Source: Macrostomum lignano
Lineage: Eukaryota
Direction: 5' to 3'
NCBI GenBank assembly: GCA_002269645.1
Contig: NIVC01002749.1
Span: forward strand, 1-42,329
Length of the DNA stretch: 42,329 nt
The notes under the pieces were generated by a model. It was not told the origin of the DNA. It saw only the letters and a list, made by a program, of their open reading frames with translations, and ran no database searches. The translations under genes were made by a program, and so were the position numbers. Of this stretch, positions 5,342 to 40,979 are shown in pieces (positions within the stretch are counted from its first letter, which is position 1; the number at the start of each line of letters is the position of its first letter).

Positions 5342-6105
5342 CCACCGGTGCTAAAACCCCCAGTGCTAAAGCCCCCAGTGCTAAAGCCTCCAGTGCTAAA
5401 GCCCCCAGTGTTAAAGCCCCCCGTGCTAAAGCCCCCAGTGCTAAAGCCCCCAATGCTAAAGCCCCCCGTGTTAAAGCCTCCGGTGCAAAAGCCCCCCGTG
5501 TTAAAGCCTCCAGTGCTAAAGCCTCCGGTGCTAAAGCCCCCAGTGCTAAAGCCCCCCGTGTTAAAGCCCCCAATGCTAAAGCCTCCGGTGCTAAAGCCCC
5601 CAGTGCTAAAGCCCCCAGTGCTAAAGCCCCCAGTGCTAAAGCCCCCAGTGCTAAAGCCTCCGGTGCTAAAGCCCCCGTGTTAAAGCCCCCAGTGCTAAAG
5701 CCCCCAGTGTTAAAGCCCCCCGTGCTAAAGCCCCCCGTGCTAAAGCCCCCCGTGTTAAAGCCTCCGGTGCTAAAGCCCCCAGTGCTAAAGCCCCAGGTAC
5801 CAAAGCCCCAGGTACCAAAGCCCCAGGTACCAAAGCCCCAGGTACCAAAGCCCCAGGTACCAAAGCCCCAGGTACCAAAGCCCCAGGTACCAAAGCCCCA
5901 GGTACCAAAGCCCCAGGTACCAAAGCCCCAGGTACCAAAGCCCCAGGTACCAAAGCCCCAGGTACCAAAGCCCCAGGTACCAAAGCCCCAGGTACAAAAA
6001 CCCCAGGTACCAAAGCCCCAGGTACCAAAGCCCCAGGTACCAAAGCTCCAGGTACCAAAGCCCCAGCTACCAAAGCCCCTGGTGCTAAAGTCCCTGGTAC
6101 TAAAG
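5342..6105 (+). repeat. Two-part 15-bp tandem array (GTGCTAAAGCCCCCA ~30 units, then GTACCAAAGCCCCAG ~20 units), possibly coding
   Basis: Directly visible. The unit switches near 5790. A 1-nt shorter C run at ~5671-5675 shifts phase. Two plus-strand frames are stop-free (VLKPP/VPKPQ and APSAK/APGTK). Confidence 0.95.
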
Positions 6106-6250
6106 CGGCACCATTAAATGAAGTGATCACCTTAAGAGGCCGCCTCCAAGTCAGAAATACAGGCTACCTAATGGTTTGAATTTCAATGCACCCCGCTTCC
6201 CTTCGAGTTCAAACCATTCTTTTCATTTTTTGTTACTCTTTGCATTTCAG

Positions 6251-8732: not shown

Positions 8733-10396
8733 AGCAGTTGCCGGTGTGAATAGTCAGAATAATGCTTAGCTTACTTATGCTTCTTTTGACTTGTTAAAAA
8801 AATCTGCTTATGAACGGGGGCAGCCAAAGCAGAAGAGCGCTGTGCTGTGGAGGCCGCAGGTTTTCGCTGTAGAATGCATTGTCGAGATCACGGGGTTTTG
8901 CAGGTTTTAGCACCAACTTTTTCTTACCTTCTCGACTCCATAAGTTGACTCTTTTAATAACTGATCTATTCAATGCGTAATTAAACAAAACATATCACTA
9001 AAGACTTGAATGAAACGCATGGAAAACTCCATCCAGGAAAAGTGATTTTCTGCGTCGAAAACTCCAGCAAAGTTCGCACGGTGCAGCGTCCTTTCGAGCG
9101 CATGTGCCCACTTGCCCGAGCGTCTGAATTATGAAAATCTTTGCAATATTTTGATCCTGTACTTGTACCACTGCAGCCGATTAACTTGCTGGTTGTTTAT
9201 AATTTTCTTATATCAAGGTAGGTCTGCTCGATGCATACTTTATGAGATTAGCGCAAACACAGAAGCTGAAGGTCAAATTCGTGACATGGAAGTAAATGTT
9301 TCCCATGCAGTAAGACGTGCATAATGATACGATTTTAGCTACCTGGAACGAAAAATCTCTTTAAGCCATTTCGATGAAAGTTATTTATGCAGGAAAATTC
9401 TTGTTTTTGTTTAACTTTATTACAATTTTTAGTTTTTGTCTCTACAAAATACAGCCTGTCTCGTTCCTAAAATATACCTTTCTGTTACCAATCTTAGATG
9501 CTTTGCCTTTTTCCACTTTATTCTTAGCAAATATTCAAACTATGCGGATGTTCCATTTGCAGATGTCTACAACTCCCTTGCTCACCAGCACAAACATTTT
9601 GTGGCCAATAGTTAAAATTTCAAGAAACTGCTTGAAACAATTTAGCAGAAGATCCGCTAAATGCAGTAGCTCCGGCCAAATTTAAAGTCTCTGGCAGCAC
9701 CAAAGCCGAACATTTCTGCGTACAAAACGGCAAGAACACTGCCCTTCTGTCGGCGTGCTTCATGCGCTTTTAGCGAACAACTACAAAGCCAGTCTGTGCA
9801 TGGACTGCATTTGGTTTAATTGCTAACAGCAATATTTACACACCCCTTGAAAGTGTACAATTTAATTAATTTTTCGCTAAATTAACGCTCGTTTGCATTG
9901 CCTCATAAAAAGTTTATTGTAAAGAAGCAAGCGAATCACTGATGAGCTTTACGATGAGGTTTCAAGGTTTGCTTAATTCAACTCTCTAAAAATGGGGTAC
10001 AGTCTGCGCCGCAGGTATGTACGCAGGTCTAGAGGGAGGGCTGCAGAAGCGGATAAGTACGTGCGTGTCTTTTCACAGTGCAGGGCACGTCGAATCGAAT
10101 TCTTAGTCACTTTTGTTTACTCGCGAACGAACAGACCGACCAGGCCAACACGCGCTCGTCTCGCTGAGATTCACCGGACGCCTACTTGTTCAGGATAAAG
10201 CGACCAAATTCTGGGCTTCGCTCAGTGCACGAATAAACAATTCTGGACGAATCTGCATAGCAGGTCAACTAATGCTTCAGCAATATTAACACTTCCTTCT
10301 AAGAAAATTTACGACAGCTAATACCAGCTTAAAATTTAGCTAATATATTATATTGAAATTCGAAAAAGAGGCTCTGCAATTTGAATCTGCAATCGA

Positions 10397-12938
10397 ATGG
10401 CCACGGGCGGCCCCAAATTACCTGCTGACCTGCAGGAATGTCTGAACTGGCTGCAAAACTGCTTTCGCTACGACGAGCAAGAAATTTATGAGTCGCTGCG
10501 TTGCATTTTCGGGCCAGGAAACGCGAGCCTGACCGACATAATTAACGTACTTCGAGACGGGATCGTACTGTGTCAGCTGGTTGTCATCCTCAGCGATGGC
10601 GCCGTTCGACGCAGCGAGCTCAAAGGATTTCGACTCATTACGCTGAATTCGGTTTGCGTCTACCGCGACAACATCTCGGCTTTCCTGAGCGTCTGCCAAA
10701 ACTTTTTCCAGCTGAAGGAGAGTATGCTTTTCACACCCGACGACCTCATTGACCGAAAAAATATTGACAAAGTAATTTCGAGTCTAGCTTTGCTCAGCCA
10801 GTCCCCGAAGGTCGACCAGTCGAGGTTTCCTGGCTTCCAAGTGTCCGACAGTCTGCGCGTGGCTCTGCGGCACTTGAGCACAAATACAAGGCAGCCTGCC
10901 TGGTCCGAGCTCTCTGAGTCGGTCGAGCGACTTCGCTGCAACATGGTTGACATCTACAGCGACCAGTTGACAGTCTACACTGAGACTGAGGGCGTCTATG
11001 GGAGCCTCGTGGACGACTATGAGTACGAGCTGGACGATGGCGACGACCCGCGGGTAGGCAACTGGCAGCAGCTGCTGCTCAGTGAGAGGAACTACACGCA
11101 CCTGCTCGAACAGCTGACTACCTACTCAAACAGTCTAAAAGGGACAGTCGGAATGGCTGCGGAGCCGGCATTTCACTACATCCCGGCCTTGTACGAACTG
11201 CACGCTCGCTTTCTCGCACGGTTGGAGTGCATCGCGCGCATCAACCCAATCGCCGATCGGCTGCGCGCAGTTTGCGCCTGTATTGCCAAGAAGAAGCTTC
11301 AGCTCTGCATTGTCTACCGCGATTACTTGGTGAACATGCCGCAAGCCATCGAGTGCGCCGATCGGCTGCAGCGGAGCTCAGGGCTGAGTCAGACGGCCAG
11401 TCACCTGCTGCCACATCATCCTCTTCGCGATTTGCTGCTGGCCCCGCTGCAGCGGGTGCAGCGGTATCCCGACATATTCAAGGCCTGTAAGGAGACGCGG
11501 GCAGCTATGGAGGACTTCATGGAGGTCTGCTGCTATACCCAGTCCTACAAAGAGAACGAATCTGTCATTCAGGTATTACCTTCAGCTGATATCCATAATA
11601 ATAGATGAAGCTGATAAATCCTATATACTAAGTCGTTTTCTATGAGATGTTAAAACATATTTCAGGTACTTGACCGTGTGCAAGCCGGCATCGCAAACCT
11701 GGATCGCAGTTTGCAACTGAGAGACTTTGGTAGTCTGTTGGTCGAGGGGGAGGTGCGCCTCTCACATCTGTCTTACGACAAGTCTGACAAGGACAGTCGA
11801 AGCGTATACTGCTACCTTACAGGTGAAGTGCTGATAGTGTGCAAAATTGTCGGCGACAAAAAGTCCAGCGGCCGCCTGGAATTCTTGTACAGCATCAGAA
11901 TTCCGGAGAAGTGCATGATTCAAACCGAGGAGGCCCCGCGATATAAAAGTTGGCGCTGGCTGCTTACAGTTCAACAGCCAGAGGGAGCCACGCCCGACAG
12001 CACCATAGCGGACGACCTGCGCTACCGAATGCAGCTCAAGTCCCATCGAGTGCAGCAGAACTGGCTGGCTGCTTTTAAAAGGGCCGTATCAGTGCGATAT
12101 CCGCCAAATCACAACTCTTTCGGGCATACTTTTCTGCCTTATATAAGTCTAGAGCCCGTGAATTGTCGTGAATGCAACCGAATCATTTTGCCCGGCTACG
12201 GGCTCGGTTATCGCTGTCGGATTTCAGGTCGCGTGGTGCACCGGGACTGCATTCCTTCAGCTCCAAGGCAACGCAGATTTGAGCACTCCCCGTCCCAGCA
12301 GCTGGCCTCGTCAACCCCGCCGCTGACTCCTCCACGGCAGAGACCTCAGCCAGCACAAATGCCGGCGATGGCGCCACAACCTCAACCGCCGCGGTCACCT
12401 TCTCCGCCACCACCACCTCCACTAACACCGATAGTGCCAAAACAGCTGCCACCGCCGCCGCCACCACCGCCACCGCCGCCACCACCGCCATCGTCACAGC
12501 AGTGTGTCAGAGCACCTGCAGACGCCCAACGCGGTCCAGAGACCCCATCAGACATGTTCATGTCGGACGATTCCGATGAGGAGAATAACTCGAAAGGCGG
12601 CCCTCCAGGAATCGACTACCACTGTCACAACGAGGGCGTTGCAGCAGGCTGGCATGGCCGAATGTCCCGCGGAGCAGCCTGGGCGAAACTGCTGCGAGTC
12701 CCGATCGGTATGTACCTATTGCGCTGCAGCCCACGGCCTGGTGTAGATGAGCACATTCTATCCTATCGAGCGTCTGACACCGTCCGGCACAAGAAGATTT
12801 TCGAGGCGGACGGTCAGTTCTATCTGGAGGAGAAAGCCACGAAAGTTCACGAGCATTCGGGAGCTGTTGCTGCACTATGCTAGCCCTAAAGCACTGAATG
12901 ATGCGTGCATCGATGTGAGGCTAACAGAGCCAGTCTAA
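10397..12938 (+). CDS. vav: Vav-family Rho guanine nucleotide exchange factor (CH - acidic - DH - PH - C1 - Pro-rich - SH2), with no SH3 seen
   Basis: CH: LRDGIVLCQLV...NISAFL...DDL..KNIDKVISSLALLS. Acidic Tyr motifs: DIYSD, GVYGSL, DYEYE. DH: ERNY..LL and LRDLLLAPLQRVQRYP. PH: LRDFGSLLVEGEVRL. C1: HTF..C..C..GYRC...H..C. SH2: WHGRMSR..A..LL...GMYLLRCS...RHKKI...GQFYLEE..KFTSIRELLLHY. One intron at 11573-11665. A +1 frameshift (extra A at 12833-12835) lies within SH2. Confidence 0.9.
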
Positions 12939-15142: not shown

Positions 15143-16720
15143 CTAGGAGTTGCACAGGTTGCGAAGGCTGTCGAACTGGGACTCGCTAAGCGAGGCGTTC
15201 GCGAATCCCCAGCACTGCAGCCAGCCGCTGTAGTAGGGAGGGCTCGAGCCGAAGCAGTTGCCGATGCGGAGGCAGTCGTAGTATTGGCTGGCGACCGGAC
15301 TGCCGCCATTTCTATTCGGTGTTTCTGTGTTGTGCAGGCTTCCATTCATGTACCACTTGTTCGCGTAGTTCAAGGCGGCTCCATCGAAGCTCACTCCCAC
15401 CGAGCTGCGTCTCTGATTGCTGTCGTTTGGAATGACTGTCTGAGAGTTCACATAAGCATAGAGGTCAGAACCGTCCACGAAGTATGTTCTTGCGTAAACT
15501 CCGCCATTGTTGTTGGTGCTCAAGTAGCTCACAGTCGAGCTCGAAGAGCAGCTGCTGAACGAGCTCAGGCAATTGCCCCTGCGCGCGGTAAAAAATACCA
15601 ATAAGAATATGCATAGTTCCTCAACATCGAAAGCAGATTATTCCCAAACTCAATATGAGTGTTCTTACGCGCCGTTGATCGCGAAAGTTCCTTGAAAGAA
15701 GAAGCTGAAATCTTTTCCAACTTTGAAATTATTAAAATAGTTCGGCGTGCTAATTTCGATATAAGAGCCAGACGCGCCATTTAAACGAACTCCGCTAGCT
15801 GAGTTCTGCTCGGCCACGCCAACCGGACTGGCTTGGTGGCTGATCGGGTCAATCAGGTTTGTGTAGCCCTTCTTGAAGTCGTACCAAAGCATCATGTTTG
15901 AAGCGAAGCCAAGAGCCGCAATGCCGGATGTAGGAGCCACAGTGGTGGTGCTTGACTGAATGGTGGTCGGCGATCCAGTTATTGTTAGAGGGTTGGGTGA
16001 GCTGGTTTGCATAGTAGGCGGAGCTGGACCATCTGTGGGAAGTTCAATTAGCTCTACATAGTGCGAGACATTGGAATTAAGCCCAGGGGGTGTAGCCTTG
16101 TGGTTAGAGCGTCGGACTCACGACTTGAAGGTCGGGGGTTCGATTCCCGATCCCACTGGAACAATTTGTGTCCTTGAGCAAGACACTCAACTCTGCATTG
16201 CTTCAGTTCACCCAGCTGTAAAATGGGTGCCAGCATTAACTGGGGTAATTGAGGGTGTGTGTGGCGACGTCCCAGTGCTTGGACTGAACAGCCTTCAGAT
16301 GCGCCGCGCAATAGCTGCGGCTGAGCTGTCGGTTGCACATCTGCCCATTAGGGCAGCTGTAATCAACTATTATTATTATTGAGCAAAGAAGGTTTATGGA
16401 GCATAGCTCTTACTGCAATTATCCACACGCTTAAGTCGCGCAATCATCTCGGGTCCGCAGCTCCCGGCCGAGACGTCGGACAGGCTGTAGCAGGCCTTGC
16501 TGTCCCTCAGGTACACAGAAAGCTGGCACCCAGGGTCCAGGGTGCAGCGAAACAGGCACTCGGTCTCCACGGCCGCAGTCACAGACTCCAGGCCAGCCAG
16601 TGCAGAGGGGCAGCTGCTGGTCGTCAGCTCAAAAATCGCGGAGCCCTGCGGGCACGCTGATGATGAACCGCACAGTAGCGAAAGCATGCCGATCAGCGCG
16701 GCAAAAGATGCTGAGATCAT
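15143..16720 (-). CDS. Secreted protein: signal peptide, PAN/apple-like Cys domain, Ser/Thr/Pro linker, LamG/concanavalin-like domain
   Basis: Exons 16720-16414, ~16032-15669 and 15578-15143 in consistent phase. Hydrophobic N-terminus MISASFAALIGMLSLLC. PAN pattern ECLFRCTLDPGC...CYSL. LamG-like segments LWYDF, VRLNG..SYI, FSFFF, LRIG..YYSGWLQCWGF. The domain names are pattern-based inference. Confidence 0.75.
16086..16380 (+). mobile_element. tRNA-derived SINE with a CORE-like central domain and (TAT)n tail, antisense in the first intron of the PAN-LamG gene
   Basis: A box TAGCCTTGTGG and B box GGTTCGATTCC in a tRNA-like head. Central TGTGTCCTTGAGCAAGACACTCAACTC...CACCCAGCTGTAAAATGGG resembles the CORE-type SINE domain. 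It ends in TATTATTATTATT. No clear TSD. Confidence 0.85.
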
Positions 16721-17148: not shown

Positions 17149-17439
17149 CAGTAGCTGTTCTTACTTGAATGTTCTTATTACAGAATCTTCTTACAGTAGC
17201 TGTTCTTACTTGAATGTTCTTATTACAGAATCTTCTTACAGTAGCTGTTCTTACTTGAATGTTCTTATTACAGAATCTTCTTACAGTAGCTGTTCTTACT
17301 TGAATGTTCTTATTACAGAATCTTCTTACAGTAGCTGTTCTTACTTGAATGTTCTTATTACAGAATCTTCTTACAGTAGCTGTTCTTACTTGAATGTTCT
17401 TATTACAGAATCTTCTTACAGTAGATGTTCTTACTTGAA
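17149..17439 (+). repeat. 45-bp tandem repeat, ~6.4 copies, made of three 15-bp subunits
   Basis: Unit GTAGCTGTTCTTACT-TGAATGTTCTTATTA-CAGAATCTTCTTACA, with near-identical copies and no spacers. Confidence 0.95.
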
Positions 17440-18004
17440 CATCAGCACACTCTGTGCCTGTGGGGCCGACCTAAAAGCTGAAGACCAGGGGAGGGGGTAC
17501 GGAAATGAAATCGCAGCGCATTTTTTCACGAAAGAACAACTCTGCTTTTGTCATTGAATATTGTTACAGTCTGGATGGGTGGCGATTCGAAGAATTTTAA
17601 GTGGATGGTAAAATCTTTTCGATCAATATCGATTCTCGACGACAAGAGAAAGACTCAATGGGCCTAGAAAGAATTCATGGACCGAGTCTGATGGTGTTGG
17701 CTGATCAGGTTCTGCTTTCCGCCCCATCAAGCATCGCCCGCTCTCCCGTGTGATCTCCGCTTCTCTCCATAACGGGAGGCGGAAATACGAGCTAGTGAGG
17801 GAGAGTTTAGTAAGGCTGATGAACAGATTGTGGGTTGGTTGGTTGTTTTCTTGTAAAGAATTGAGGAGATATGCAGGTTTTTGGGGTTGTAAAATATTGA
17901 GAGTGCAGGTAGTTCTGGTTGATGGATAGGTTTGCTGGTTTGGGAAGAAAGAAATAATAAAAATGTTAGCATACGGAAAGAAGGTAAATAACTTGATTAG
18001 TAAA

Positions 18005-18454
18005 TGTACTGCCGGGTGTGCTGCCGGGTTTGCTGCCATGTGTGCTGCCGTGTGTGCTGCCGTGTGTGCTGCCGTGTGTGCTGCCGTGTGTGCTGCCGTG
18101 TGTGCTGCCGTGTGTGCTGCCGTGTGTGCTGCCGTGTGTGCTGCCGTGTGTGCTGCCGTGTGTGCTGCCGTGTGTGCTGCCGTGTGTGCTGCCGTGTGTG
18201 CTGCCGTGTGTGCTGCCGTGTGTGCTGCCGTGTGTGCTGCCGTGTGTGCTGCCGTGTGTGCTGCCGTGTGTGCTGCCGTGTGTGCTGCCGTGTGTGCTGC
18301 CGTGTGTGCTGCCGTGTGTGCTGCCGTGTGTGCTGCCGTGTGTGCTGCCGTGTGTGCTGCCGTGTGTGCTGCCGTGTGTGCTGCCGTGTGTGCTGCCGTG
18401 TGTGCTTCCGTGTGTGCTGCCGGATGTGCTGCCGGGTGTGCTGCCGGGTGTGCT
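18005..18454 (+). repeat. 12-bp tandem repeat (GCCGTGTGTGCT)n, ~37 copies
   Basis: Homogeneous core with GCCGGG-type variants at both ends. It directly abuts the retrotransposon RT remnant. Confidence 0.97.
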
Positions 18455-19560
18455 TGCTGTTCGCCAAGCTGGGAGGCGGCTGCAAGTGGACAAAAGCTCG
18501 ATCTGTCCAATGGCTTCCTGCAGCTTCCGCTCGCCGAGGACAGCAAAGCCTTCGCCAATACCAACACTCCCAAGGTACTTCCTTGATGCCTTCTGGCATC
18601 AAGTGCGTCACAGTGATTTTTCAACAGACTCTGGAAACTCTGCTAAGAGATCTCGACTCTGTCCAGGTGTTTGTCGACGACATTCTGGTCACGGGCAAGA
18701 CGATGCAGCAACATATGAAACACCTGGAAGAAGTTCTTCAGCGCCTCCTTGAGTCGGGACTCAGACTGAACAAGCAAAAGAGCCTGTTATTCATGGAATA
18801 TTTGAGATACCGCATGTGGACTCAGCCCGCTAACGCACAGGGTGGCCGCAATTCAAGACGCCCCAGCGCCGAAGGACGTCAGCTAGCTGCTCTCGTTCCT
18901 CGGCATGCCGGTTCCTGCCGCTCGATCAGCTGCTGGCTAAGGACGCGGGACAAGCCGCAGCAAACTACCTTCAGTGAGACTAAGCTGCTGCTGCTCCAAT
19001 CACCGGTGCTGGTGCACTGCAATCCGGATCTTCCGCTGCGGCTCGAGTGTGACGCTTCACGGGACACGAAGTGGGCGTGGTGTTGTCCCATCTTCAAATG
19101 AGTTCGCTGAGTTCGTCAGGTCCAACGGAATCCGGCACATCTTCTCGACGCCATTCCACACGGCAAGCAACGGCCAGGCCGAGCGCTTCGCCCAGTTGCT
19201 GAAGCGGCATCTGAGTAAGTGCGGTCACTCCGACGAGCAACTTCAAAGACTGCTGATGGCCTACCGCAAGACTCCGCAAAGCGTCAGAGGCACCGCGCCC
19301 AGCCAGCTGGTCATTGGCCGCCAGCTGCGCAGCCGGCTGGGTCTCCTGACACAGTCTCAGGAGCAACAGCGGCCAGTGTACCAGTTCCAGGCTGGAGATT
19401 GCGTGCTCTACCGCGATTTCAGATCTGCTGCTCGTACAGGAGAAAGCAGTCGCTGGGTCGAAAGGTTTCATCGTCAATGCCAGCGCTCGCAACTGGCAGA
19501 ATCGATTGACCGAATCGATCAGCCGCACAGCTCCGGTTGAGGGCTGCGCGGCAACTGACG
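18455..19560 (+). mobile_element. Decayed, internally deleted Ty3/gypsy LTR-retrotransposon pol (RT, RNase H and integrase fragments)
   Basis: Across frameshifts: LFAKLGGG, KLDLSNGFLQLPL, MPSGI..VIFQQTLE..FVDDILVTG..H..HLEEVLQRL..GLRLNK, LVHCNPDLPLRLECDAS, FVRSNGIRHIFSTPFHTASNGQAERF, YRKTP..APSQLVIGRQLRSRL. The order RT-RH-IN is the gypsy type. Confidence 0.92.
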
Positions 19561-21345: not shown

Positions 21346-24300
21346 TTATTCTTCATGGCCTTTCACCAGACTGATTACCTGAAACAAGTATTAAAACAAA
21401 TAGCTATATCGATACTTCGAAAAAGTTCCATACTTGAAGCCCCGCCAAGAATTTCCCCAGCTTGCCTGGTGCCCGAACAGCAAGGCCAGCGTGCCGGATG
21501 CGCCCACCAGCTGGCAGACGGCCAGCAGGGCGCCCCGCAGCGGAGCGGCGCTGTCCGGCAGGCAGAAACCCAGCGCCAAGCCCACCAGAGCCGCGGTGCC
21601 GACATTGCAGACGCTGGCTGCGGTGAGGCGGGCGTCGCTTGGCTCACTCGGGCGGAGCTGTCGCGTCTCCCAAGCGAAAAACAGCCCGAAAAGCAGCTGG
21701 ATGCCTGAAGTACATAAATATTAAGGCTTGTAACTTCTTTGATCAACTTGCATATTCAACGGTTGCTGACCTTTAAACCCAATGAGGACGCCAATCCACA
21801 CAATGTTGGAGCTCGATCGGCACACGGAGAGCACTTCGCGCACCAGCGAACCAGACTGAATGTTCTCCTAAAAGTGATTTCAGTACGAACTTACGAGTAG
21901 TTTCCGACTCTTATTTCCGCACAACGGATTTTATCGATGGATTGTATCTGACTTTGAATAAACCTAATTGTTACACTTCCTCCTACTAATGGATCTTGTT
22001 GATTAACTTCAATGAGTGCATGAGTGCATGTAATGGAGTCGAAATTGATGCCATGATAAATACGTAGCTTGTAGCTCGTATAGGCTTTTAGCCATTGCTC
22101 ACCAAAGCCCATAGATCGACAGTCAGTAGCTTCGTTGGGTCAAACACGGACCATGAAGTCAAAATTGCAGCGTCAGTTGCCAGCAGGGCCGCGACCAGGC
22201 CAGGAAGAACCGAGTCACGAGGCCGCTGAAGAGTTAAGAAGCGGAAGAATTGACTTACAGTCCATAAAAGTCCATGATTCGCTCATATCTCTTAAGTTTC
22301 TACTTTATCTTCGTATGCATGCAATTACGAGATATATTCGTAATTAAAAGACATTAGCACAAGGGTCAGCGAAGAACCTGCTGGTGGTAAGCCGCTGTGG
22401 CCAGCCTAGCTGCAGATATATGTAGCCACGAGTATACACAACGAGCTATATCCGAGCCACAACTCATTTATGGGTCGCTCACACTTCCTGAAACGGTGCA
22501 GTGGAGGCGCCACATTTTAGTCAGCATGGCGCCCAGCCCGAAGGAGCAGCCGGTGCACAGCAGAACCGCCTGAGCCCAGCAAAGATCGCAGGAGGCTCCA
22601 GCAACCAAATTCACGGCCTGAATGACGCAGCTGATGCTGCATAGCAGGCAGCCCACAGACACGCAGCAGTTCGCTCTCGGGCTGCTTAGCCTGATGACGG
22701 CTGCCTCTGAGCGGAAGATGTTCAGGCAGACTGATGCGATGCTGAGCACAGCGGTCAAGCCGGAGATCGCAATGATGACGATGGCGGCCGGTGCGGACAG
22801 GGTCAGCTGCCGCCACTCCAGCAGCGGCTCGTCAACCGGCGGCTTGGAACCTGAATGAGTTGTTGGCTCTGTTTAAGCGTTTAAATATTTTCTGTGCAAT
22901 AAAATTAGTATGCTGAATAAAACTTTACCAGCAAACCACAGTTGCTTTAGCCAGGTTATGGCACCCGTCACTGGGCTGAACTCTGCCACTAAATCAACTG
23001 TATTGTCTGCAATTAGTAATGGATGCTGGTATACTCGTAGCAAAGAGTACAGTTGAAATGTCACATTGATCTGGCTCTCACTTCGATGCTGATATATTAG
23101 TAGATCAGCCGTGCGGTCGTTGTTGTCATCAAATGCGATGGGACCCTGGATACGGTAAAAATATGCCCTTGTATTTAAAAACATCACTCGTTTCCATGCT
23201 TATTAGTGATACACGAATCAAAGCCTACTGAAATTCCCACGAAGTTGGTTGACTTCAAACTTTCAATCAAGGCCTGCTTGAAGGGTGTCTTGCGCCGGGA
23301 CGAGTAGTTGCCGTTGTCCGAGTAATCTCCCTGCTGCAGCGTCGCGTTGATGGCCACCGCAGCTGTCAGAAAGGCGTCAAACTTCAGGTCGAGACCGAGG
23401 ATTGTTGAAGACACCGTGATTTTTTCCCGGTCAGGGTACACGCTGAGGAACTTGTTGTACAGCTCTTTCGAAGTCTGAAGAGTTATGTTATTATTCAGTC
23501 ACTAAATAAGGTGCCATAAAAATTATTGGGATTCGGAAATTCATAAATTTAAATAATGTGAATTATGCTCTACTCGCGATAATTGCCATCTCACGAATGA
23601 AATTTGCGGGGAATTTATGAGTGTGTAATGCCTTCTACAAAGTTCTCCATGATCGAGTGGAACAAGCAACTAGTGCCGCACCAGTCCGACAATGCTGCGC
23701 GGTCTCCGGTCGGCCATTTCAGTCACAACACTACCAAATTCCACAGAACCCTCCAGAGCTGAAGCGGCCGCGCTGGTTGAGCACTTCGGTGGTCGCGAGT
23801 GCAGCCGCTGAGTGTAGCCCAAATGAATCCAGAAGTACTTGGGTCCGAACAGTCTGTATTTGAAGATCTGAGGGTTAGTAGAATTACGTAAACCAATTGA
23901 TTTAGAGCATTAAACTAGAAAATAAAGCTCATTCTTACCAAACATTCCAGCCGCTGCTCTTCAGAAAACACAACTCGAACGGCTATGAAAATTCGAATGT
24001 CTCTTGTCTGTAAAGGTCAAATGGGAATACTTAATGGTTTAAATGGTTTGAACAAATTGGAACCAGAATTACAGCTCGTTTCTGACTAGCAAAAAAAGTC
24101 TTTCTAAAAGCCTGGCTTGAGCAAAAACAGTGGAAAAATTTATCGACTTGCTAGGAGGCGGTGCTTACAATCAGGTGCTCAAGCTGTTCCGTAGCGTCAG
24201 TCGCGTAGATTACTTTTTCGTAATGTGTGATGTTGCTGGCCGTCAGCTTTGTCTCCAAGTCGTTAACCATCTAGTAATTTTTTGTTTACAGGAAAGCGGA

Positions 24301-25481
24301 TATAGCATTTGCCATGCAGCAGTATCAGCAGAACAAAGTGGCTTCTCTGATCAAAGACAGTTTTTTAAAATAGGATTCGACTCAGAATCTCCGTTTCATC
24401 GCACACTAATCAAAAGCTAATAGACCTTCTGATTACGGGAAAATTCTGGTCAAAAAAGGCCTAAACGGAAATAATTAAGACTATTTCTGCCTCAGAAGCT
24501 CCAACTGGCGCCTCTTCTCTGAAGAAGTGTCTGTACTACGAACTAACTGCCCGGCCGCAAGGTTTGGGTTAGGCAATGCTGTAAGTGACCTTGGATTTCT
24601 AAAACGTTAAAATAAAATAAAACGTGATGTCATGACTACACTATCCTTCAACCAACGAGAAACAGATAGAGTAAGAAAACTTCTCGATATAGATTTAATG
24701 AATTCAAATTCAAACTATAAAAACTTTTTTTCGAAATTTTGGAAAGGGGTTACAATATCTCACGGATGCCACACTGCCAGAGTCGGCTACTAAAAGGCCA
24801 ACCCTGGCCCATCGGTACCGCAGCAGCAGCTGCACAGTGAGCTCCGCGTACTGGCTCTCGGTGTAACACAGGCGAAGAAGTACGGATAGGCCCTCTTGTT
24901 GCTGAGATCCGAGGCCGGAGCTGACGTGCCGATCTGAAATTTAGTTTAAGAAACTTTCATGCATTTCATCATGTATTTTCATTTTACTTTCATCACGCAT
25001 CCCTGCCGCTCAATCCCACCTGGGCAGCATAGTAGTACTTGGCCAAGTCGGCCACTGACTGCGCCTGCTGAATGAGGACGGGGCCGATGACCAGGGCTTT
25101 CGGAGGCGGCGACAAATAGCCGTCTATGAACTCCTTGACTGCACTGCCGGTGTCACTCTGAGGAAAATTACAATGAGGCATGAGGCGGACTACCGTTTTC
25201 ATTGAGGTATTTTTGCACTGTTGCACTTTCAAGTTAAGAATTGATGAATCACTCACCATCACAGGAAACCGGTTCTCATACTCGAGTCGGAAACTGGGAA
25301 ACAGGTGGGTCAGGTTGTTAATGTATCCAACCGAGAACTCATTGTAATAGACTGCTGTTTCTTGACTGCTGGTTGACTCGTAGTCCAGAACTAGAAGGTG
25401 AAAGGTGCTTCTGTTTTCCGAGGCAGCTGCAAGAACGGCTGCGTCGTGCATACAAAAAGCTAAAAGCAGCAGGAGCAGCAT
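21346..25481 (-). CDS. GABA-B-receptor-like class C GPCR, copy A (signal peptide, Venus flytrap, 7TM, ~10-aa C-tail); one 1-nt frameshift
   Basis: Motifs: IGPVL; SAP.SDLSNKRAYPYFF(R); RDIRIFI; GPKYFWI; GPIAFDDNNDR; KPPVD; LSSPRAN; FGLGAMLTKMWRLH; WSVFDP; LFGLFFAWETR. A 1-nt deletion at ~24874 (TTC TTC [C]GC) shifts the frame. The last intron has a GC donor at 21465. Stop TAA at 21346-21348. Confidence 0.88.
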
Positions 25482-27640
25482 GCTTTCTCGCAGTCACAGC
25501 CTCGAGCTCATTAGGAGCTTCAAGTTCAGGAAAGCAGATTAGGGCTAGTTGGATCAGACGTTAAGTATAGGATGGATAAAATTCAAATTTGATCTCATTG
25601 GCTAGAATGGTCACCGTGGATGCACGAATTTTACTTGGCTCTTTGACTGCTACGAGCTGGTTGAATTTTAGTCCAGAATGAAGAAAAACGGCAAACTTAG
25701 ATAAAATGCTCAACTGAGAGGTCTGTCACTGATACCACTATGCCAAGGTTAATGAGATGTCAAGGCTCCCGGGATTTTTTGAGATGGGATCAAGAAAAAT
25801 ATTGAAATTTCGATTGCCTACTGATGCAACTGTGCGTTTGACTGCTCCTGTTTACGTCCCCTTGCTCTGCCCCTGCGTATTTACTGTTCATTTATTATTT
25901 TCTCATGATTTCCTCATGTTCAAATACTGTTGATACATGGTCAAAGATGCATCTGATTTGCGTCAACGCTTCAGTTCCTCGCTTTCCAAGGCTGCTGCTT
26001 GGGGCAGCTCTTGGTTTGCTTAGTTTAGTTGGTTGTCGAGCCATCTTCCTGTCCTGCGATTTGCTTGAGTACAGCTTCCGATTCTGGAAAGGCGTGGTCG
26101 CGCTTCAGCTCATGACATTCATAAGAAACAAATCGATATTGAGTTCGATTGCACCAGAGAAATGTGCCGCGCGATCTTTGAACGCCTCTTGGTGAAGCTC
26201 GTTCACAACTCAGCGAAATGAGTCATCAAATTACACGAATACACGCTTCACGGATTCGTGTAAAATTCGAGTGATGGCAGCCGCATGAATTCGCATTTTT
26301 GATGAAAGAGACAGAAAGTATTTCCTAAAGTGCTGCACATCCAACTCCTAGTGGTGCTGGTGTCCGCAGTAAAAATTCCGTGAACTTACACAAAGTGACT
26401 TTTTCGTCCTTAAAACTGATACTCAGTCATGTTAAATGAATAAAATTCTGTTTTGACAACAGAAGGTGAAATCTACTACGAGTACAGTCCGTTATTCGTT
26501 ACTTGCTCCGGGACTGTGAAGTGATTCTGTGAAGTGATTCGTGAAGTAAATGTAAAACTAATAAAATGTAAAACGTTTGCTATGCATCTGCTTTCAAAAA
26601 ATGTTCTGCAATAAATATCTCGAAAATTCTTAAACAGTTTTTAAACGGTTTTTCCAAACTTTTGGTGTTAGAGCGAAATTTCCCTAAAATGACATGAAGA
26701 CTTGAAACCTTTGTCAAAGGATTTTTGAGTCAATTAACTGGCTGCTGCTGCTAGTTGCTCCATACTTACAAGTTTAGACTGCTGATGTAATCCAGGTGGG
26801 TTAGAAGTTATATTCTGACGCTTTGTTAAAATATATGTAATTTATTTCATTTTCCAAACGGAGACCTCTTTGTTTTATAGAAACACCTGTCAAACTTGCT
26901 CTCTTTGACCAATTAATTATGTCAACCGCCCCGGCAATTAAAATTATTCACAGGTTTTGACCTCGGACCAGGCTGTGGAAAACTCAAGATTGAGACAGTG
27001 AAGCGATAGAATATGTAATTCGCGGGAATAACAGATAATTTTGTGAGCCACTGTAACCTGCTTTTTGCCTGCTAAATCATTAACCGCTTGAGACAAGTAA
27101 TCACCGGCAACAATAGCTGAATATAGGAATAATTAGCAAGCTTTTTCTCTGAAAAAACTCTAAGGAGACAAGCTGCAAGTCTCTCAACTCTCGGTGCAAA
27201 AACAGTTGCGCCAGCTTGTGAAAACGTCGTGTATTTCTAATTTTTTCGGGTGAAAAAGCAAACAGAGCTTTTGATTGCTCGATCGAAATTTTGAGTGCTG
27301 AGGACCCTGAGAAGTGCATTGGGTTAGGGTTTCACGAAACGATTCCAGATCGATAACTAGCAGCTAGTCGTGAGAATAAGAAGTGAAACTTACTCAATGT
27401 CATATTTTTCCAGTAAAATCTTTGAGTAAGTATTTCTCCAGACAAAGTCAACTTTGCAAAATGGATGCATGTTAAAACCAGAATCCACTATATGGAAATC
27501 TGTTACACTAAGGATATTTTGCTTTCTAACTCTACGATCTGAGTCGAAGTTTCTACGATTGTGTTTTTCTCGAATTTCAATGTTTGTTCTGAAAACACTC
27601 GCTCGCACTGTCGTTGCTTATAAGCCTTGACGCTGCTCAG

Positions 27641-30600
27641 TTAAGTAGTCGAGGTCTGGTTTTGATTCATTGTGGACCCGTTGCCAGGCAGTGTGTTGTT
27701 GAGATCGTCCACCTTTGACGGGCCGTGTTTGATGATGGTGAAGATCTGGAGTGTGAATCATGGCGAATTGCTTGATTTTCGTAAGCCCTCTAAAAGCCCT
27801 AGGACAGAGCGGCTTACCTTACTACCGAAGACGATAATAACCACAGTGGTGCAGCAGAGAAAGATGCAGCCATTGATGAGGAGAAAACGCACGTTGACCT
27901 CGCTATTCGGCAGCACGAACGCCATGGTCACGCCAATAGCGCCCATCACCAAGGTGTTGTACACGCAAACGCCAATTTTCTTGGAATCGTTGAGGCTCTC
28001 AACGTGCACCATGCGGGTCTCCCAGGCAAAGAATATGCCAAAGATGAGAAGCAGGCCTGCCAATTCAGAATAATGTACTTAAAGGTAACGATTATGCAAA
28101 AAAAATTTATTGGCGTACTCATGTGCACAAGACATTAAAAAGGCTGCAAGTTCGACCAGTTTTCTCACGGTCTCCACCGCACCTGCAAATATATCAATAA
28201 TTGAGGCTATTGAAATCTGTGAGGTTATGTGGACCTTGAGAACCCTATTGAGCCGACAGTAAGCCTGTGGAGTTCACCGAGCATAATCTATCGTTTCTTA
28301 CTCGACTGAACAACATAAATTTATGACTCAACGAAAACTTGACGCTTGCCTTTGATCCCGAGAAAAATTCCGGTCCACATGACCGAATTGTTGCAGTCAC
28401 ACTCCTGAATTTCCTGGGATTCGATTGTTCCAGAGCTGAGCCACTCCTGGATGAGCAGGGCGACGGACATTCGATACGAATGGACAGCGGATATTCGATG
28501 GAACAGGAAAGTGGCACAAAATACCTACTCACCACAACGGCTAACTGAGTGATTTTGACTTTGATGGGGTCCTTGACAGCCCAGACTATGAAGACGATGA
28601 TGTCAGCCAAGACGATTGCCAGAACCATGGCCACCAGGTGCATATCCTTGATTGACTGCAATCAAATATTATGATTTGGCATGCGCATTGAGCTAGGAAA
28701 ACTATTAAGTGTGTGGTGCTCGGTTATACTGAATGAATCAAAGTTGAGCATGATTGTCCTAAAAAACTCAGCTTACCACTCGGCGCAAATTTTTTGTCGT
28801 GAAGATGATGTGCACCCGCCAAGTCTTGGACAGCATGGCTCCATAAGCCACCGAGTAGCCAATGCACAGGCAGATCGTCTGCAGCCAGCAGTAGACTGCA
28901 GAGTTGCTCCAGTGTCCGGAGATGGCGCTGAAGATGCTGGACATGTAGCACATGATGCATCCGACAGCCATTAGGTTGTTGATATTCGGCGAGGACATCT
29001 TGATGAAGCGAAGATGGCGGAAAGCTAAGTTTACGCCAATCGAAGAGATGGTGAGAGCCACGCCGACAGAGCAAAGAAAAATTATGACGATGGCGTTGCT
29101 CCTTGGAACCGAGATGCGATACGTGACTCTCTTGGGCATGTCGCTGGGTGGCTGACCACCTGTGCATGGTTTTAGCTTAATTAAGTATCCAACAGCAGAG
29201 TAAAACGAGTTGCATAACTTGAAATTCAGTAAGCCTAGCTTTTTAAAAGCGAGCTTTTTGATACCATGCTCGACAGTTCTTTTTTTATGAAAAAAGACTC
29301 ACCAGCGAACACCAAATCCTCGTACCACTCAAGCTTATCCGCGTAGGTGTCAATAAGGGCAACCGGTACGCCCTTAAAGCCTAAAATTTCGGTTATAAAA
29401 CACTATATTGCAGTTATATGGAGCGATGGTGTGAATTAGGCATGTAAAAATCACATCGACTCTCACTTCGAATCTGGTAAGCGATCGCGTTAGCCAGGCG
29501 ATCTCCATTCTGGTCCAGCTTTACGCGACCCTGCGAATACGATTTTTAAAATACCAAATCTTCAGCTCAGATCATCAATAATTCTTCAAGTCTTGCACTT
29601 TGTCACTTACAGTTAGTCCATAAAAATCGACAGCTCTGATATTCTTCAACAGTTCAGTTTTGAATGGACTGCTGTCCAGATCCAAAGCCGTTGAGTAGGC
29701 GTGCTTCATCAGCGTTTTGTTAAGCGCAATGGCCGCAACAGTCATTGCGTCCAAACGCGTAGCAAGGCCTCTGATCGAGACCACACTTTCGTTAACCAGG
29801 TGGGGGTACCGTCGTAGGAAGCTGGCGAACAGGCTGTTGATGGGCTGGCGTTTTGGGTTGCAAAGAACGGCTTTCGTATTAGTAAACTGAATTAAAACTG
29901 CATTGTAAGTATTTAAGTATTGATCAGTAAGATCGATTTTCAGTCAGTCGCTATCAGACGCAAACTCACCACCTGGCCGATTCCAGTTTCATTGTCAAAG
30001 ATATCAAAATGAGACCTAAAATAGAGCGAGCCCTCTGCTCCATCGGCTAGCATCTGGCTGCTGCAGGTGTCCTGCAGATTGTGTGAGAAGGTTCGCGTAA
30101 ATCCCAGTTGGATCCAGAAGTAGCGAGGTCCAACCGCGTTGTTCATCTTAAGCTGTTTAGAAAAAAAGGAAGAATTTTTTCTGAAATCGCATGTCGATAT
30201 CTATTCTTACTTGGTATGTGCACTATAACGGTGCAACGGCGCTCACCAGACATTCGAACTTTGTCCCAGTTTCGATATTTCCAGCTCGAACGACGATAAA
30301 AATTCGAATGTTCATGTTCTGGAAGCGTTTGGTCAGTTCAAGATAAAATCTGTTCTACTCGTAGCTAATTAATGCTCTTGAAAGTTTGAAAATTCTTTGC
30401 GATACAAAAGCGTACCAGCAATTGTTTCAGACTGTCTTCCGGATTATGTTGATAAACAGCTTTGCTCAAAACAGTAATCTTATTCTCAGCTAGCAAAACC
30501 TCCAACTGTTGTGTAATCTAAAATCGGTTTTGGATGATAGTGAAGTTATATCCATATTTTCCGAAGAAAGAGAAAATGTCATGAAAAAATTTCTGAGAAA

Positions 30601-32715
30601 AAACGTAGAAGTGACTTGTATAGACCACGAAACTCGAAACTCGAAGCGTCGGACGATCTGGTCAGAGCTCAGTCAGCAAAGTGAGTTCTACCAATGAGAC
30701 ATTGATGGCTAAGAACATCGGTCAGGACTGGTGCGTTCTGACTTGGATTGCACCATTGGCGATTAATTTATGCGCCCATATAGAATAAAATACGGGCGTA
30801 TATGACAGACGGGCTAAATAGCTAAAAGCAGCTGTTGAGATATCAAGACAAAACATGGAGTCTCAAACAGCAAGCTAAACGATGGAAAAATCGATATACG
30901 AACCGCCTTAAAGTTCGACAAAACACCTCTTCGGTCAATGGAAATCGACATGGGACGGATTCGAGGTGCTCTAAAGATTGGCGGCAATGAAGGATGAGAC
31001 AGGAATAAGAAGTTTTGCCTCCACACCCTGCGGTACAGCTTCAGTCTGAAAACATTTAAGCTGGTAGAAAACTTGCCAAGCCTGAAAAAAAGAAGACCCT
31101 AGTAAGATTATTGATACCATAAGAATTTCGTCACAGGAGAGATAAAGAGACTTTCAACAGACTCAAATTCTGGTTGAGATGTCAGCGCGCTGATGATGAT
31201 GATGATTCATGACCGTCAAGGAGTTGGCGAGCAGGTGCATTACTCTAAATGCTGCATGCAGTGCGGGGAACTTCTGCTGTGCGATAAAACCGTCACTGGA
31301 TTCCACGACACAAGCGCCATGGAGAAGCCAAAATTCATTTGCGAATCTGCAGAATTCAGACTATAAGAATTAGGGCTCGGACAATGACTTTGTAGATATC
31401 AGGCAGGGTATTGAGGCACTGGTACCTTGACGTCTGTCGATATCAGCCAGGGTATTGGGGGCACTGGGACCTTGACGACTGTCGATATCAGCCAGGGTAT
31501 TAGGGCACTGGTACCTTGACGTCTGTCGATATCAGCCAGGGTATTAGGGCACTGGTACCTTGACGACTGTCGATATCAGCCAGGGTATTGGGGGCACTGG
31601 TACCTTGACGTCTGTCGATATCAGCCAGGGTATTAGGGCACTGGTACCTTGACGTCTGTCGATATCAGCCAGGGTATTAGGGCACTGGTACCTTGACGTC
31701 TGTCGATATCAGCCAGGGTATTGGGGCACTGGTACCTTGACGTCTGTCGATATCAGCCAGAGTATTGGGGCACTGGTACCTTGACGTCTGTCGATATCAG
31801 CCAGGGTATTAGGGCACTGGTACCTTGACATCTGCAGATATCAGCCTCAGGGTATTGGGGTACTGGGACCTTGACATCTGCAGATATCAGCCTCAGGGTA
31901 TTGGGGTACTGGTACCTTGACATCTGCAGATATCAGCCAGGGTATTGGGGTACTGGGACACTGACGTCTGAGAGTTTTTTTCGAGGCTTTTTAGACTCAC
32001 CGCGGAAACTCCGTCATAGTCGCTAGCGAGAAGGCCCACATTTTTCCAGTTGTATCGCTTCAAAATTTGTATCATACCCACCAGATAAAGGCTGTTAGAC
32101 GTGGTGGTTCGTGAGAAGTACGGATAGACGGACTTGTCCGCCAAAGCGGGGGTAGTGGCTGTGGCGCTAATCTGGAATAAGGATAAGCGTATGTGGAATT
32201 CTATATTAGAGTCAAACTCAAACACGGAAATGAACCTTGGAATGGCCCAAGAATGAAAGAGCATAAAATTGAACGACTAATCATACCTGGGGCAGGTAGT
32301 AGTAGCCCCCGGCCAGCTCGGACAGAACCACCGCCTGGTTTGAGTAGGCAGGCCCGAACAGAAGAGCTTTGTTCGGTTCGTTCACGTAGCCGTCAATGAA
32401 CTTGCGAAGCGCGCTCCCCTGCAGCTCCTATGGCAAAGAAAGAAAGGATTTTGACTGCGAACATAATTTCAGGTTGCCAATCTCATCAAAACTCACCTTT
32501 TCGGCGCAGAAGAAAGAGGCATCAATGCGAAACGTATAGTTAAACTCTGGCTGCGCAGTCACATTGTTAATGTAGTCGAGGGCGAAGGAGTAGTATTCGA
32601 CATCGAACCGGAGTGTGGCGTTCTTTGAGCAGATAACCAGGGTGTGCACAGTTGTGCGGTTGTCCGATTGAGCTCTTACTGTCGCTATTAACAGCAACAG
32701 AAGCAGATATCGCAT
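27641..32715 (-). CDS. GABA-B-receptor-like class C GPCR, copy B (apparently intact; ~35-aa C-tail)
   Basis: About 13 exons traced in phase: MRYLLLLLLIATVRA; LLFGPAYS; ATTPALADKSVYPYFSRT; NIRIFIV; GPRYFWI; GRVKLDQNGDR; GQPPSD; IKMSSPNINNLMAVG; YGAMLSKTWRVH; WAVKDP; GLLLIFGIFFAWETR.V.VESLNDSKKIGVCVYN. GC donor at 28349. Stop TAA at 27641-27643. Confidence 0.92.
31395..31970 (+). repeat. 44-45-bp tandem repeat, ~13 copies, in an intron of GPCR copy B
   Basis: Unit GTATTAGGGCACTGGTACCTTGACGTCTGTCGATATCAGCCAGG, with ordered variants toward the right end and no spacers. Confidence 0.95.
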
Positions 32716-39647: not shown

Positions 39648-40979
39648 CGAGGGGTGCGCAAAAAGTTTCGGCAACTGGGTTCCCAATTGCAGATAAATTG
39701 TTAGTAAATCTTAAAACGTTATCAAAGTCCTTCAATGTAATCTCCGCCACGTTCTATGCATTTCTGGTGACGGCGGATCCATGCCTCGAAGGCAGCGCAG
39801 TACTCTGAAGCTGGCATGGTGTTCAGCTCTAAATTAATGTGGCGAGCCAGGTCTTGGGGCTGCTGAAAATGGCATCCAGCCATGCGTTCGGTCAGCTTCG
39901 GGAATGCCCAGAAGTCGCAGGGTGCCAAATCAGGACTGTACGGAGGGTGCGGTATCACTTTGAGCTTGTTATTGGCCAAAAAGCTTGTTGTCATGGCCGC
40001 AGTGTGGCTGGAGGCATTGTTGTGGTGCAAGTGAATTCTGCCACTTTGGAGGTGGGTTGGCTGCTTTTCCATGACTGAAGCCACGACTTTAGACAAAACC
40101 TCGCCAGTATAGAACGTGGCATTGACGTTCTGTCCATTTGGCACCATAACAACTGTCTCTGGCCCATTGATGCTGAAAAAGACGATGAACATCTGCTTCC
40201 TTGAGCAAAACCCTGGGCGCAGAACAGTTGGACGGTCTTCATCGGAACCAATCCAAACCTTGTTTTGGTTTTTGTGAGGCACTTGGAAGTAGTAAAACCA
40301 CTTCTCATCACCAGTCACAACATCAGTAAGTTGTTTAGTGCCACCTTTGCCAAAGCATCACAGAAATTCTTGGCTGCATCGAACCCTCTCCTGCTTCTGC
40401 TCTGCTGTCAGTGCATGAGGTACCCAATGGGCCGTGACCTTGCGGAGGCCAAGATGGTCATGCAAGATGGTTTGGACACTGCCATCAGAAATGCCAATTG
40501 TTTGGCTAAGTAGTGCAACAGTGATATTGCGATCTTCGTCCACTAGCTGTCACATAGCAACAATGTTCTGCTCGGTCACAGATGTCATTGGCCTCCCAGA
40601 ACGAGGGCTGTCGGTCATGGAGCATCAACCAGCACTGACCAATTCAATCCAATGGGCGACAGTGCGGTACAAAAGGGGCTTGATCTGCTACAACTTGGAC
40701 TAGCTCGGCATGAATTTTGGTGGCGTTTTCTCCGAGCTGCAATCGCATGAAAACATAAAATCTCCACTGATCAGCAGTGATATTTTCCATTTGAAGGCTG
40801 AAAACGAGACTGTATGTTAATCAAAATGCTCTAGGAAGCGAAAAAATCAATGCAATAAGCTGAAAATTTATGAACAAACGCAAAATATGGTCATATTTAT
40901 GAGATTAAAAAATGGCTACGTTTAAACTTTTATTTAAAAAGTTATGAGCCAGTTGCTAAGACTTTTTGCGCACCCCTTG
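39648..40979 (-). mobile_element. Full-length (1332 bp) but inactive mariner (DD34D-type) element
   Basis: 31-bp TIRs CGAGGGGTGCGCAAAAAGTTTCGGCAACTGG and CAAGGGGTGCGCAAAAAGTCTTAGCAACTGG, with TA TSDs at 39646-47 and 40980-81. Confidence 0.95.
39722..40790 (-). pseudogene. Mariner transposase pseudogene
   Basis: Starts MENITADQWRFYV. Motifs RSGRP, HWVPHALT, TGDEKWFYY and HPPYSPDLAPCDFWAF. It has one early frameshift and several TGA stops, and the second catalytic Asp is lost (HNNA instead of HDNA). Confidence 0.9.

Follow-up and report, generated by a model that had tools for sequence, protein, structure and literature searches.

Gene structure and domains of two neighbouring receptors

The stretch of DNA analysed here, a 42,329-nucleotide contig of the flatworm Macrostomum lignano (NIVC01002749.1; hereafter the window), carries two genes for G-protein-coupled receptors (GPCRs) of class C on its minus strand, arranged head to tail: copy A at 21346-25481 and copy B at 27641-32715. 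Stop-to-stop fragments of the two copies match pairwise and in the same order along the minus strand (21346-32715). We rebuilt the gene models from GT/GC-AG splice sites, reading-frame continuity and the homology between A and B. The resulting 14-exon models confirm that the locus holds a tandem, same-strand pair of paralogues, as an initial annotation of this DNA had observed. Copy B is an intact, uninterrupted open reading frame (ORF) of 736 amino acids that includes a signal peptide, a Venus-flytrap (VFT) domain, a seven-transmembrane (7TM) domain and a 34-residue tail; copy A comprises 712 codons and a single frameshift. All 13 introns of A fall in the same columns of a six-sequence alignment as the 13 of B, and in the same phases. 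Over 705 residues, the two proteins share 33% identity (E 3e-128). The initial annotation had set this common exon structure against strongly diverged Venus-flytraps. The exon structure stands, but the VFTs, at 34.8% identity, have not diverged more than the 7TMs, at 30.5%.

The exons of B lie at 32715-32497, 32427-32287, 32171-32001, 30517-30416, 30318-30247, 30152-29970 and 29844-29611 (exons 1-7) and at 29530-29467, 29380-29303, 29159-28777, 28655-28533, 28446-28350, 28056-27818 and 27745-27641 (exons 8-14), and measure 219, 141, 171, 102, 72, 183, 234, 64, 78, 383, 123, 97, 239 and 105 nt. Those of A lie at 25481-25257, 25157-25020, 24933-24764, 24270-24169, 24007-23939, 23867-23682 (with an alternative donor at 23727) and 23474-23229 (exons 1-7) and at 23145-23082, 23006-22929, 22850-22483, 22225-22103, 21867-21771, 21704-21466 and 21378-21346 (exons 8-14); their sizes are 225, 138, 170, 102, 69, 186, 246, 64, 78, 368, 123, 97, 239 and 33 nt. 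Two of the 26 introns in A and B are of the GC-AG type and have a common donor, AG/GCAAGC (a slash marks the splice site): the 87-nt last intron of A (21379-21465, minus strand; CAG/GCAAGC...TTTCAG/G) and intron 12 of B (28057-28349, minus strand; AAG/GCAAGC). Intron 3 of B is 1483 nt long, part of which is a 44-nt minisatellite at 31391-31970 (13 copies, 93% matches, higher-order period of 133 nt). The 2.16-kb spacer between the stop codon of B and the ATG of A (25482-27640, minus strand) contains the 3' untranslated region (UTR) of B and, presumably, the promoter of A. A tblastn search with all collected relatives, including coil-bearing ones, detected no further class C copy and no homologous coiled-coil exon in the window.

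Both proteins match the Pfam families ANF_receptor (PF01094; A, 4.8e-31; B, 9.5e-37) and 7tm_3 (PF00003; A, 9.2e-32 at residues 443-700; B, 5.5e-48 at residues 441-702). Their N-termini are hydrophobic (MLLLLLLAFC.. in A, MRYLLLLLLIA.. in B), as expected of a signal peptide ahead of the VFT. The VFT joins the first transmembrane helix (TM1) directly, in the manner of GABA-B receptors, through the linker ..FAGGQPPSDMPKRV... Pfam found neither a sushi domain nor a cysteine-rich NCD3G domain in A or B, only ANF_receptor and 7tm_3. The predicted architecture is a signal peptide, a VFT and a 7TM, with no cysteine-rich domain. The initial annotation had also pointed to the missing sushi domains. They are indeed missing by Pfam; as an argument their absence is uninformative, as sushi domains are a feature of vertebrate GB1a.

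Among proteins of solved structure, the best match of B is human GABA-B2 (GB2; E 7e-78, 266 bits), in a single alignment that covers residues 77-708, VFT to TM7, followed by fly GB2 and by human and fly GABA-B1 (GB1) at about 216-220 bits, GPR156 at about 102 bits and metabotropic glutamate receptors (mGluRs) at no more than 81 bits. Because GB2, GB1 and GPR156 all outscore the mGluRs, and because NCD3G is missing, we classify A and B as GABA-B-type class C receptors. Human and Drosophila GABBR2 (PDB 7c7q_B, 6uo8_B, 9jqx_B) resemble A and B in combining a VFT and a 7TM without a cysteine-rich domain, and B has in common with them the 7TM motifs IKMSSPN.NN, GAM.SKTWRVH, F.AWETR and LNDSK. However, identity to GABBR2 is only about 28-30%. 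GABBR1 (PDB 6w2x_A, 4mqe_A) has the same fold, belongs to the same family and scores 216 bits against B; the relaxed pattern of 7TM motifs in A resembles GB1. GPR156 (GABABL) is an orphan of the GABA-B branch that forms a homodimer without a coiled coil (PDB 8yk0). Its chains match B only over the 7TM (residues 445-699). To our knowledge, GPR156 has no VFT.

Family relationships and ligand site

A profile built from P0004 and exon 13 of B was searched against 1.84 billion representative proteins. Its top matches were M. lignano proteins: P0161, P0015, P0016, P0017, P0020 and P0024. P0161 (PAA48162.1, 753 aa) is 55% identical to B. P0015 (A0A1I8GNL1), a fused model, shares 37% identity with A in its region 2238-2945. 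P0016 (PAA63463.1) is annotated at 462 aa, a truncated model, as VFT exons are detectable upstream at about 6488-9728 of scaffold NIVC01001840.1. Including A and B, the M. lignano family comprises at least eight lineages, each no more than 66% identical to the others.

We placed A and B in a neighbour-joining tree built from 684 columns of 66 sequences with 100 bootstraps. Two class C proteins of greater distance served as its root, and its human GB1 and GB2 sequences had been verified against PDB chains. A, B, P0161, P0015 and P0016 form one clade (100% bootstrap), within which B pairs with P0161 (100%) and A with P0015 (84%). The clade joins a protein of the annelid Lamellibrachia satsuma, P0023 (KAI0230313.1), with 95% support. 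A is at most 41% identical to any of P0161, P0016, P0015 and P0023. The canonical GB2 clade (human GB2 and 17 sequences, 97%) leaves A and B outside, and human GB1 pairs with a GB1-like sequence from a coral. As each copy has a closer relative than the other in these groupings, the duplication that separates them is old. Because they sit in a Macrostomum clade outside the GB2 clade, A and B are not orthologues of GB1 or GB2.

A and B could in principle be true GB1 and GB2 orthologues that evolve fast and are misplaced by long-branch effects. The neodermatan and triclad surveys found two glutamate-family receptors in Schistosoma and nine in Schmidtea and placed none of them with GABA-B (PMC3261222), so flatworm GABA-B genes could be highly derived; in addition, GB2 is the best solved match of B and the deep nodes of the tree are weak. 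However, A and B join all of the M. lignano paralogues and the annelid gene rather than GB1 and GB2 separately, both lack the coiled coil that is conserved from fly to human, and neither carries the GB1 binding residues. We regard orthology as highly improbable.

The initial annotation had proposed a lineage-specific, expanded family of orphan receptors, and the fully supported Macrostomum clade, its lineages and a tandem array on another scaffold bear this out. Scaffold NIVC01001840.1 holds at least three P0016-like class C GPCR copies on the same strand in tandem (1-1325, about 6488-12690 and 21672-21953). This array indicates that the family grows by tandem duplication, which is enough to account for the adjacency of A and B; their proximity is most simply a relic of such an event. 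At least eight lineages and an array of at least three copies amount to a modest expansion; a chemosensory family, the possibility raised in the initial annotation, would be marked by a large lineage-specific expansion and by expression in sensory cells. We also considered whether the P0161 locus repeats the tandem arrangement of A and B, and rejected this, as P0161 is alone at its locus. The other M. lignano paralogues of the clade (P0161, P0016, P0015), all uncharacterised and at loci other than that of A and B, and the annelid P0023 carry, where the tail is complete, the tail motif K(H/Q)GPSK(V/I)(D/E)D or RVDD. We found no published work on GABA-B or class C receptors of Macrostomum in the literature.

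In GB1, GABA or baclofen is contacted by W65, S130, G151, S153, H170, Y250, W278 and E349 (PMC6429233; bioRxiv 10.1101/621060). Seven of these positions could be compared, since W65, like C103, lies outside the reference string, and the alignment near E349 is uncertain. At S130/G151/S153/H170/Y250/W278/E349, copy A has I/S/P/C/V/Y/G and copy B has S/T/T/T/N/F/G; the contact residues are thus lost at all seven positions in A and at six of seven in B, which keeps only the counterpart of S130. In lacking the GABA-contact residues, B is again like GABBR2. Cys259 and Cys293 are kept in A and B, as in GABBR1. Cys129 of the Cys103-Cys129 bridge is absent in A, B, P0161 and P0015; P0016 is without that region. 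By the criteria used for Nematostella, neither A nor B is predicted to bind GABA, and because the contacts are not conserved a different ligand is likely, as the initial annotation had suggested. Both copies would then be orphan receptors that respond to something other than GABA. At the two positions that bind the ligand carboxylate in GB1, Ser and Thr are retained in B and P0015, and for this reason an amino-acid-like ligand is conceivable for these two.

C-terminal tails

The tail of B follows ...IIVFGSK and consists of the 34 residues IFTIIKHGPSKVDDLNNTLPGNGSTMNQNQTSTT encoded by its terminal exon (27641-27745, minus strand), which carries a proximal KHGPSKVDD motif common to the paralogues and is 48% identical to the tail exon of P0161 (E 1e-6). 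The C-terminal 99 residues of B, including the junction of exons 13 and 14 and the stop codon, are identical at all 99 positions to M. lignano UniProt entry A0A1I8G1D4 (P0019). The tail of A, ...LLFGHQ/VISLVKGHEE followed by a stop codon, is 10 residues long and depends on the GC-AG intron described above; it would extend to 25 residues if that last intron were left unspliced. Its terminal exon (21346-21378, minus strand) aligns with IFTIIKHG.. of B and the paralogues, and an AATAAA hexamer overlaps the stop codon of A. These lengths agree with the tails of about 10 and 35 residues first reported for the two copies.

No heptad segment was found in the tail of A or B with a crude, home-made heptad score that gave 0.98 for human GB1 and 1.00 for human GB2 as positive controls; both tails contain Pro and Gly, and neither contains an RXR motif. 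The initial annotation was thus right that neither a coiled coil nor a tail RXR is visible. When all tree members were scored, canonical GB1, GB2 and a third clade had a strong heptad segment 30-50 residues after TM7 (scores 0.8-1.0). Among members of the Macrostomum clade with a complete tail (P0015 runs on into unrelated sequence by fusion), 10-52 residues follow TM7 and a segment of this kind is absent throughout. A and B differ from GABBR2, whose coil lies 30-50 residues after TM7, against tails of 10 and 34 residues here, and from GABBR1, which has the coiled coil, the tail RXR, sushi domains (in the GB1a isoform only) and Cys129 that they lack. The proximal motif is IFTIIKHGPSKVDD in B, IFMLIKHGPSKVDD in P0016, ILLLVQHGPSKIED in P0161 and ..GGQRVDD in the annelid protein. 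P0161 and P0016 (PAA entries) are models of the Mlig_3_7 GenBank annotation, which was built on a genome-guided transcriptome and on poly(A) sites determined by experiment (PMC5730564), and both models end in short, coil-free tails. Because these paralogues have such tails, the short coil-free tail is a family trait, with transcript-level support in the paralogues.

Our data make it likely that A and B are anciently diverged tandem paralogues in a Macrostomum-expanded family of GABA-B-type receptors, a spiralian side branch apart from GB1 and GB2. Several points weigh against this interpretation, besides the alignment limits at the ligand site. The tree sample is biased towards GB2-like sequences, with GB1 represented by the human protein and one coral sequence, and its deep nodes have support of 5-46%. 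P0019, the sole independent support for the 3' end of B, is itself a gene prediction. Furthermore, a 45-codon frame stays open in register after the TAA of B (27506-27640, minus strand) and contains a heptad-like segment of 28 residues, EQTLKFEKNTIVETSTQIVELESKISLV, whose score of 0.86 is the second highest among 893 fragments of the window and lies within the range of true GABA-B coiled coils.

This last observation raises the question of whether the short tails are annotation artefacts, such that the real mRNAs include further 3' coding sequence and a coiled coil. A possible donor, AAG/GTGGAC, follows HGPSK in B, and the first AATAAA of B lies 794 nt downstream of the stop. However, splicing from this donor would remove residues (VDD...) that are conserved as coding sequence in P0016, P0161 and the annelid P0023; the transcript-based models of P0161 and P0016 end without a coil; and nothing like the post-stop segment exists downstream of P0161. 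Beyond the end of A, the best crude score is an unconvincing 0.79 (99th percentile of the window) and a retroelement follows, and the tblastn search with coil-bearing relatives gave no match in the window. Since P0161 lacks a counterpart and the residues that would be removed are conserved as coding in the paralogues, the heptad-like segment is probably a chance occurrence in the 3' UTR of B, and longer, coil-encoding mRNAs are very unlikely.

What would a coil-free tail mean for function? Class C receptors dimerise through VFT and transmembrane contacts. Fly and human GB1 and GB2 have a conserved coiled coil, whose role is quality control during trafficking (PMC12499500), and GB1 constructs from which it had been deleted were used in functional assays (PMC12499500). 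The different assembly mode proposed in the initial annotation is therefore not required. We suggest that A and B would act as dimers through VFT and transmembrane contacts, like other class C receptors, and that their delivery to the surface would not be gated by coiled-coil masking of a retention signal for the endoplasmic reticulum (ER). In fly GB2, a 12-residue ordered segment ahead of the coil contributes to G-protein coupling (PMC12499500), and IFTIIKHGPSKV of B occupies the place of this segment. Because B keeps nearly all GB2-type 7TM motifs and has this proximal segment at the position of the fly GB2 coupling segment, it is probably signalling-competent.

Copy A, its possible partners and the wider GABA-B branch

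The frameshift in copy A is absent from the initial annotation and is our main addition to it. The coding sequence of A is 2138 nt long, one short of a multiple of three, and its exon 3 has 170 nt vs 171 nt in B. The lesion lies in this exon at about 24871-24876 (minus strand), where a single C stands in place of an expected CC, between TTC TTC (..YPYFF) and (C)GC CTG (RL..). Exon 3 begins in one frame, up to ..NKRAYPYFF, and resumes one base out of register with (R)LCYTESQYAELTVQLLLRYRW..; the two flanks each align to B and the paralogues. As assembled, the frame runs into a TAG at 24792-24790, 27 codons past the frameshift. Downstream of the shift, the homologous frame is free of stops for about 570 codons spread over 11.5 exons, and no splice site is damaged, which implies either a very recent lesion or an error of the PacBio-based assembly. 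A tiny intron of 19-21 nt could restore the frame; we rejected it, as it is too short and would take away residues that the paralogues conserve.

Copy A is also the most degenerate and most divergent member of the family, with the longest branch in the clade. Degeneracy was gauged on the 70 alignment columns in which at least 85% of 63 relatives agree. Departures number 20 in A, 15 in human GB1, eight in P0015, seven in P0161 and six in B; human GB2 has none. Within the 7TM of A the LNDSK and IKD motifs are lost and the second intracellular loop (ICL2) is five residues shorter. The only RXR-type motif in the 7TM or tail of either copy is an RPR in this loop (A residues 550-552, 22195-22203), which may well be a chance match. 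We read A as one of three things: a pseudogene of very recent origin, a copy damaged in assembly, or a degenerate subunit that does not couple.

That A is a real, recently disabled pseudogene, which would leave B as the sole functional gene at the locus, is possible, though on balance doubtful. The 1-nt frameshift with its early stop, the long branch and the conserved-residue losses speak for it, and the DV1 genome contains large duplicated blocks, so that a copy could be dispensable (PMC5730564). A also has no match in the protein collections, where full-length B has five; the word-index search is lossy and misses even the identical P0019, so that this absence is uninformative. The long open frame and intact splice sites downstream of the shift point the other way, as does the position of the missing base in a CC dinucleotide of a PacBio-derived genome.

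Alternatively, A and B, which the initial annotation had raised as possible dimer partners, could together make up an orphan receptor that works only as a heterodimer and divides its labour as GB1 and GB2 do. B would couple to G protein, A would be the degenerate partner and the tandem arrangement would serve co-expression. The 7TM departures of A resemble those of human GB1 in number and in place (e.g. at IKMSSP and LNDSK), and the two copies come from two old sublineages of the clade. In addition, the shortened ICL2 of A carries the only RXR-type motif, and the ER-retention signal of fly GB2 lies in ICL2 (PMC12499500). Several observations argue against this arrangement. A is frameshifted in the assembly and lacks even the Ser and Thr carboxylate positions, so that it is not an obvious ligand-binding subunit. 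The closest paralogue of B, P0161, is solitary at its locus, and at least three near-identical copies of the same type stand side by side at another locus, where duplication explains adjacency. RPR, finally, is a three-residue motif that arises easily by chance. We therefore consider an obligate pair unlikely. A broader form of the idea, in which the whole clade consists of old A-type and B-type receptors that form obligate heterodimers without a coil, with B coupling and the RPR in ICL2 of A acting as a quality-control signal, seems to us quite unlikely. If true, coil-free heterodimers of A and B would mean that the roles divided between GB1 and GB2 had been invented a second time, independently, by genes that lie side by side.

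Returning to the reading of A and B as old paralogues in an expanded side branch, receptors of this general form are known from other invertebrates. In the cnidarian Nematostella vectensis, a coiled coil is predicted in only three of eight GABA-B homologues (Levy et al., bioRxiv 10.1101/621060); half are without the GABA site, and several are without the GABA-binding residues and the Cys103-Cys129 bridge (bioRxiv 10.1101/621060). Drosophila GABA-B-R3 (dGB3) is an orphan member of the GABA-B branch, its function unknown (PMC12499500). Coil-free short tails also occur in many predicted relatives from annelids, nemerteans, hemichordates, echinoderms and corals (Capitella, Lineus, Glandiceps, Montipora). 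Like these genomes, Macrostomum has several GABA-B-like paralogues, including coil-less members. The Nematostella and other invertebrate homologues fall in other clades of the tree, however, and the GABA site, lost in the Macrostomum clade, is retained in four of the Nematostella proteins. Coil-less GABA-B homologues are thus an already known kind of invertebrate receptor, which the initial annotation overlooked.

The remainder of the window holds unrelated genes and repeats. Downstream of A, a retroelement fragment on the plus strand (18004-19537; RVT_1 3e-14, RNase H-like) is flanked by a 12-nt microsatellite (18005-18454) and a 45-nt repeat (17149-17439). It lies between A and a convergent gene for a Vav-like guanine-nucleotide exchange factor, with large exons at 10385-12880 (plus strand) that encode CH, RhoGEF and C1 domains and then a proline-rich stretch. 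Between the two, the segment at 16086-16339 is 86% identical over 254-259 nt to 7828-8077 of NIVC01004220.1, a scaffold that is otherwise unrelated; we presume it to be a dispersed repeat. A gene for a calcium-binding protein of the EF-hand type lies at 7871-8729 (plus strand; EF-hand_7 3.6e-19; tail rich in Lys and His, with a Ser-Gly repeat). Two long simple arrays, one with a 15-nt unit at 5348-6106 (51 copies) and one with an 11-nt unit at 6541-7610 (97 copies), produce long spurious ORFs in all frames. Adenylate/guanylate cyclase catalytic exons occupy 671-2126 (minus strand; Guanylate_cyc 9.7e-18 and 1.1e-6), are also matched by vertebrate guanylate cyclase 2G in tblastn, and probably extend to about 3367. 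At the other end, an ORF for a mariner/DDE-type transposase (39725-40357, minus strand; DDE_3, Transposase_1) lies in an AT-rich stretch, with a GC content of 0.32-0.40 from 34 kb on.

These results are of use chiefly for annotation and for comparative studies. Automatic annotation would overlook what our analysis flags in copy A, probably a mis-assembly or a pseudogene. It also identifies tractable orphan receptors in a transgenic model that is amenable to RNA interference, which would be useful for questions about the ligands of such VFTs. In this basal flatworm, a GABA-B-type branch appears to have been kept and expanded without the coiled-coil checkpoint or the GABA site, whereas Schistosoma and Schmidtea show no clear GABA-B receptor. 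The family would thus place a spiralian example beside the cnidarian evidence that the coiled-coil/RXR system is a property of canonical GB1 and GB2 and does not extend to the GABA-B branch as a whole.

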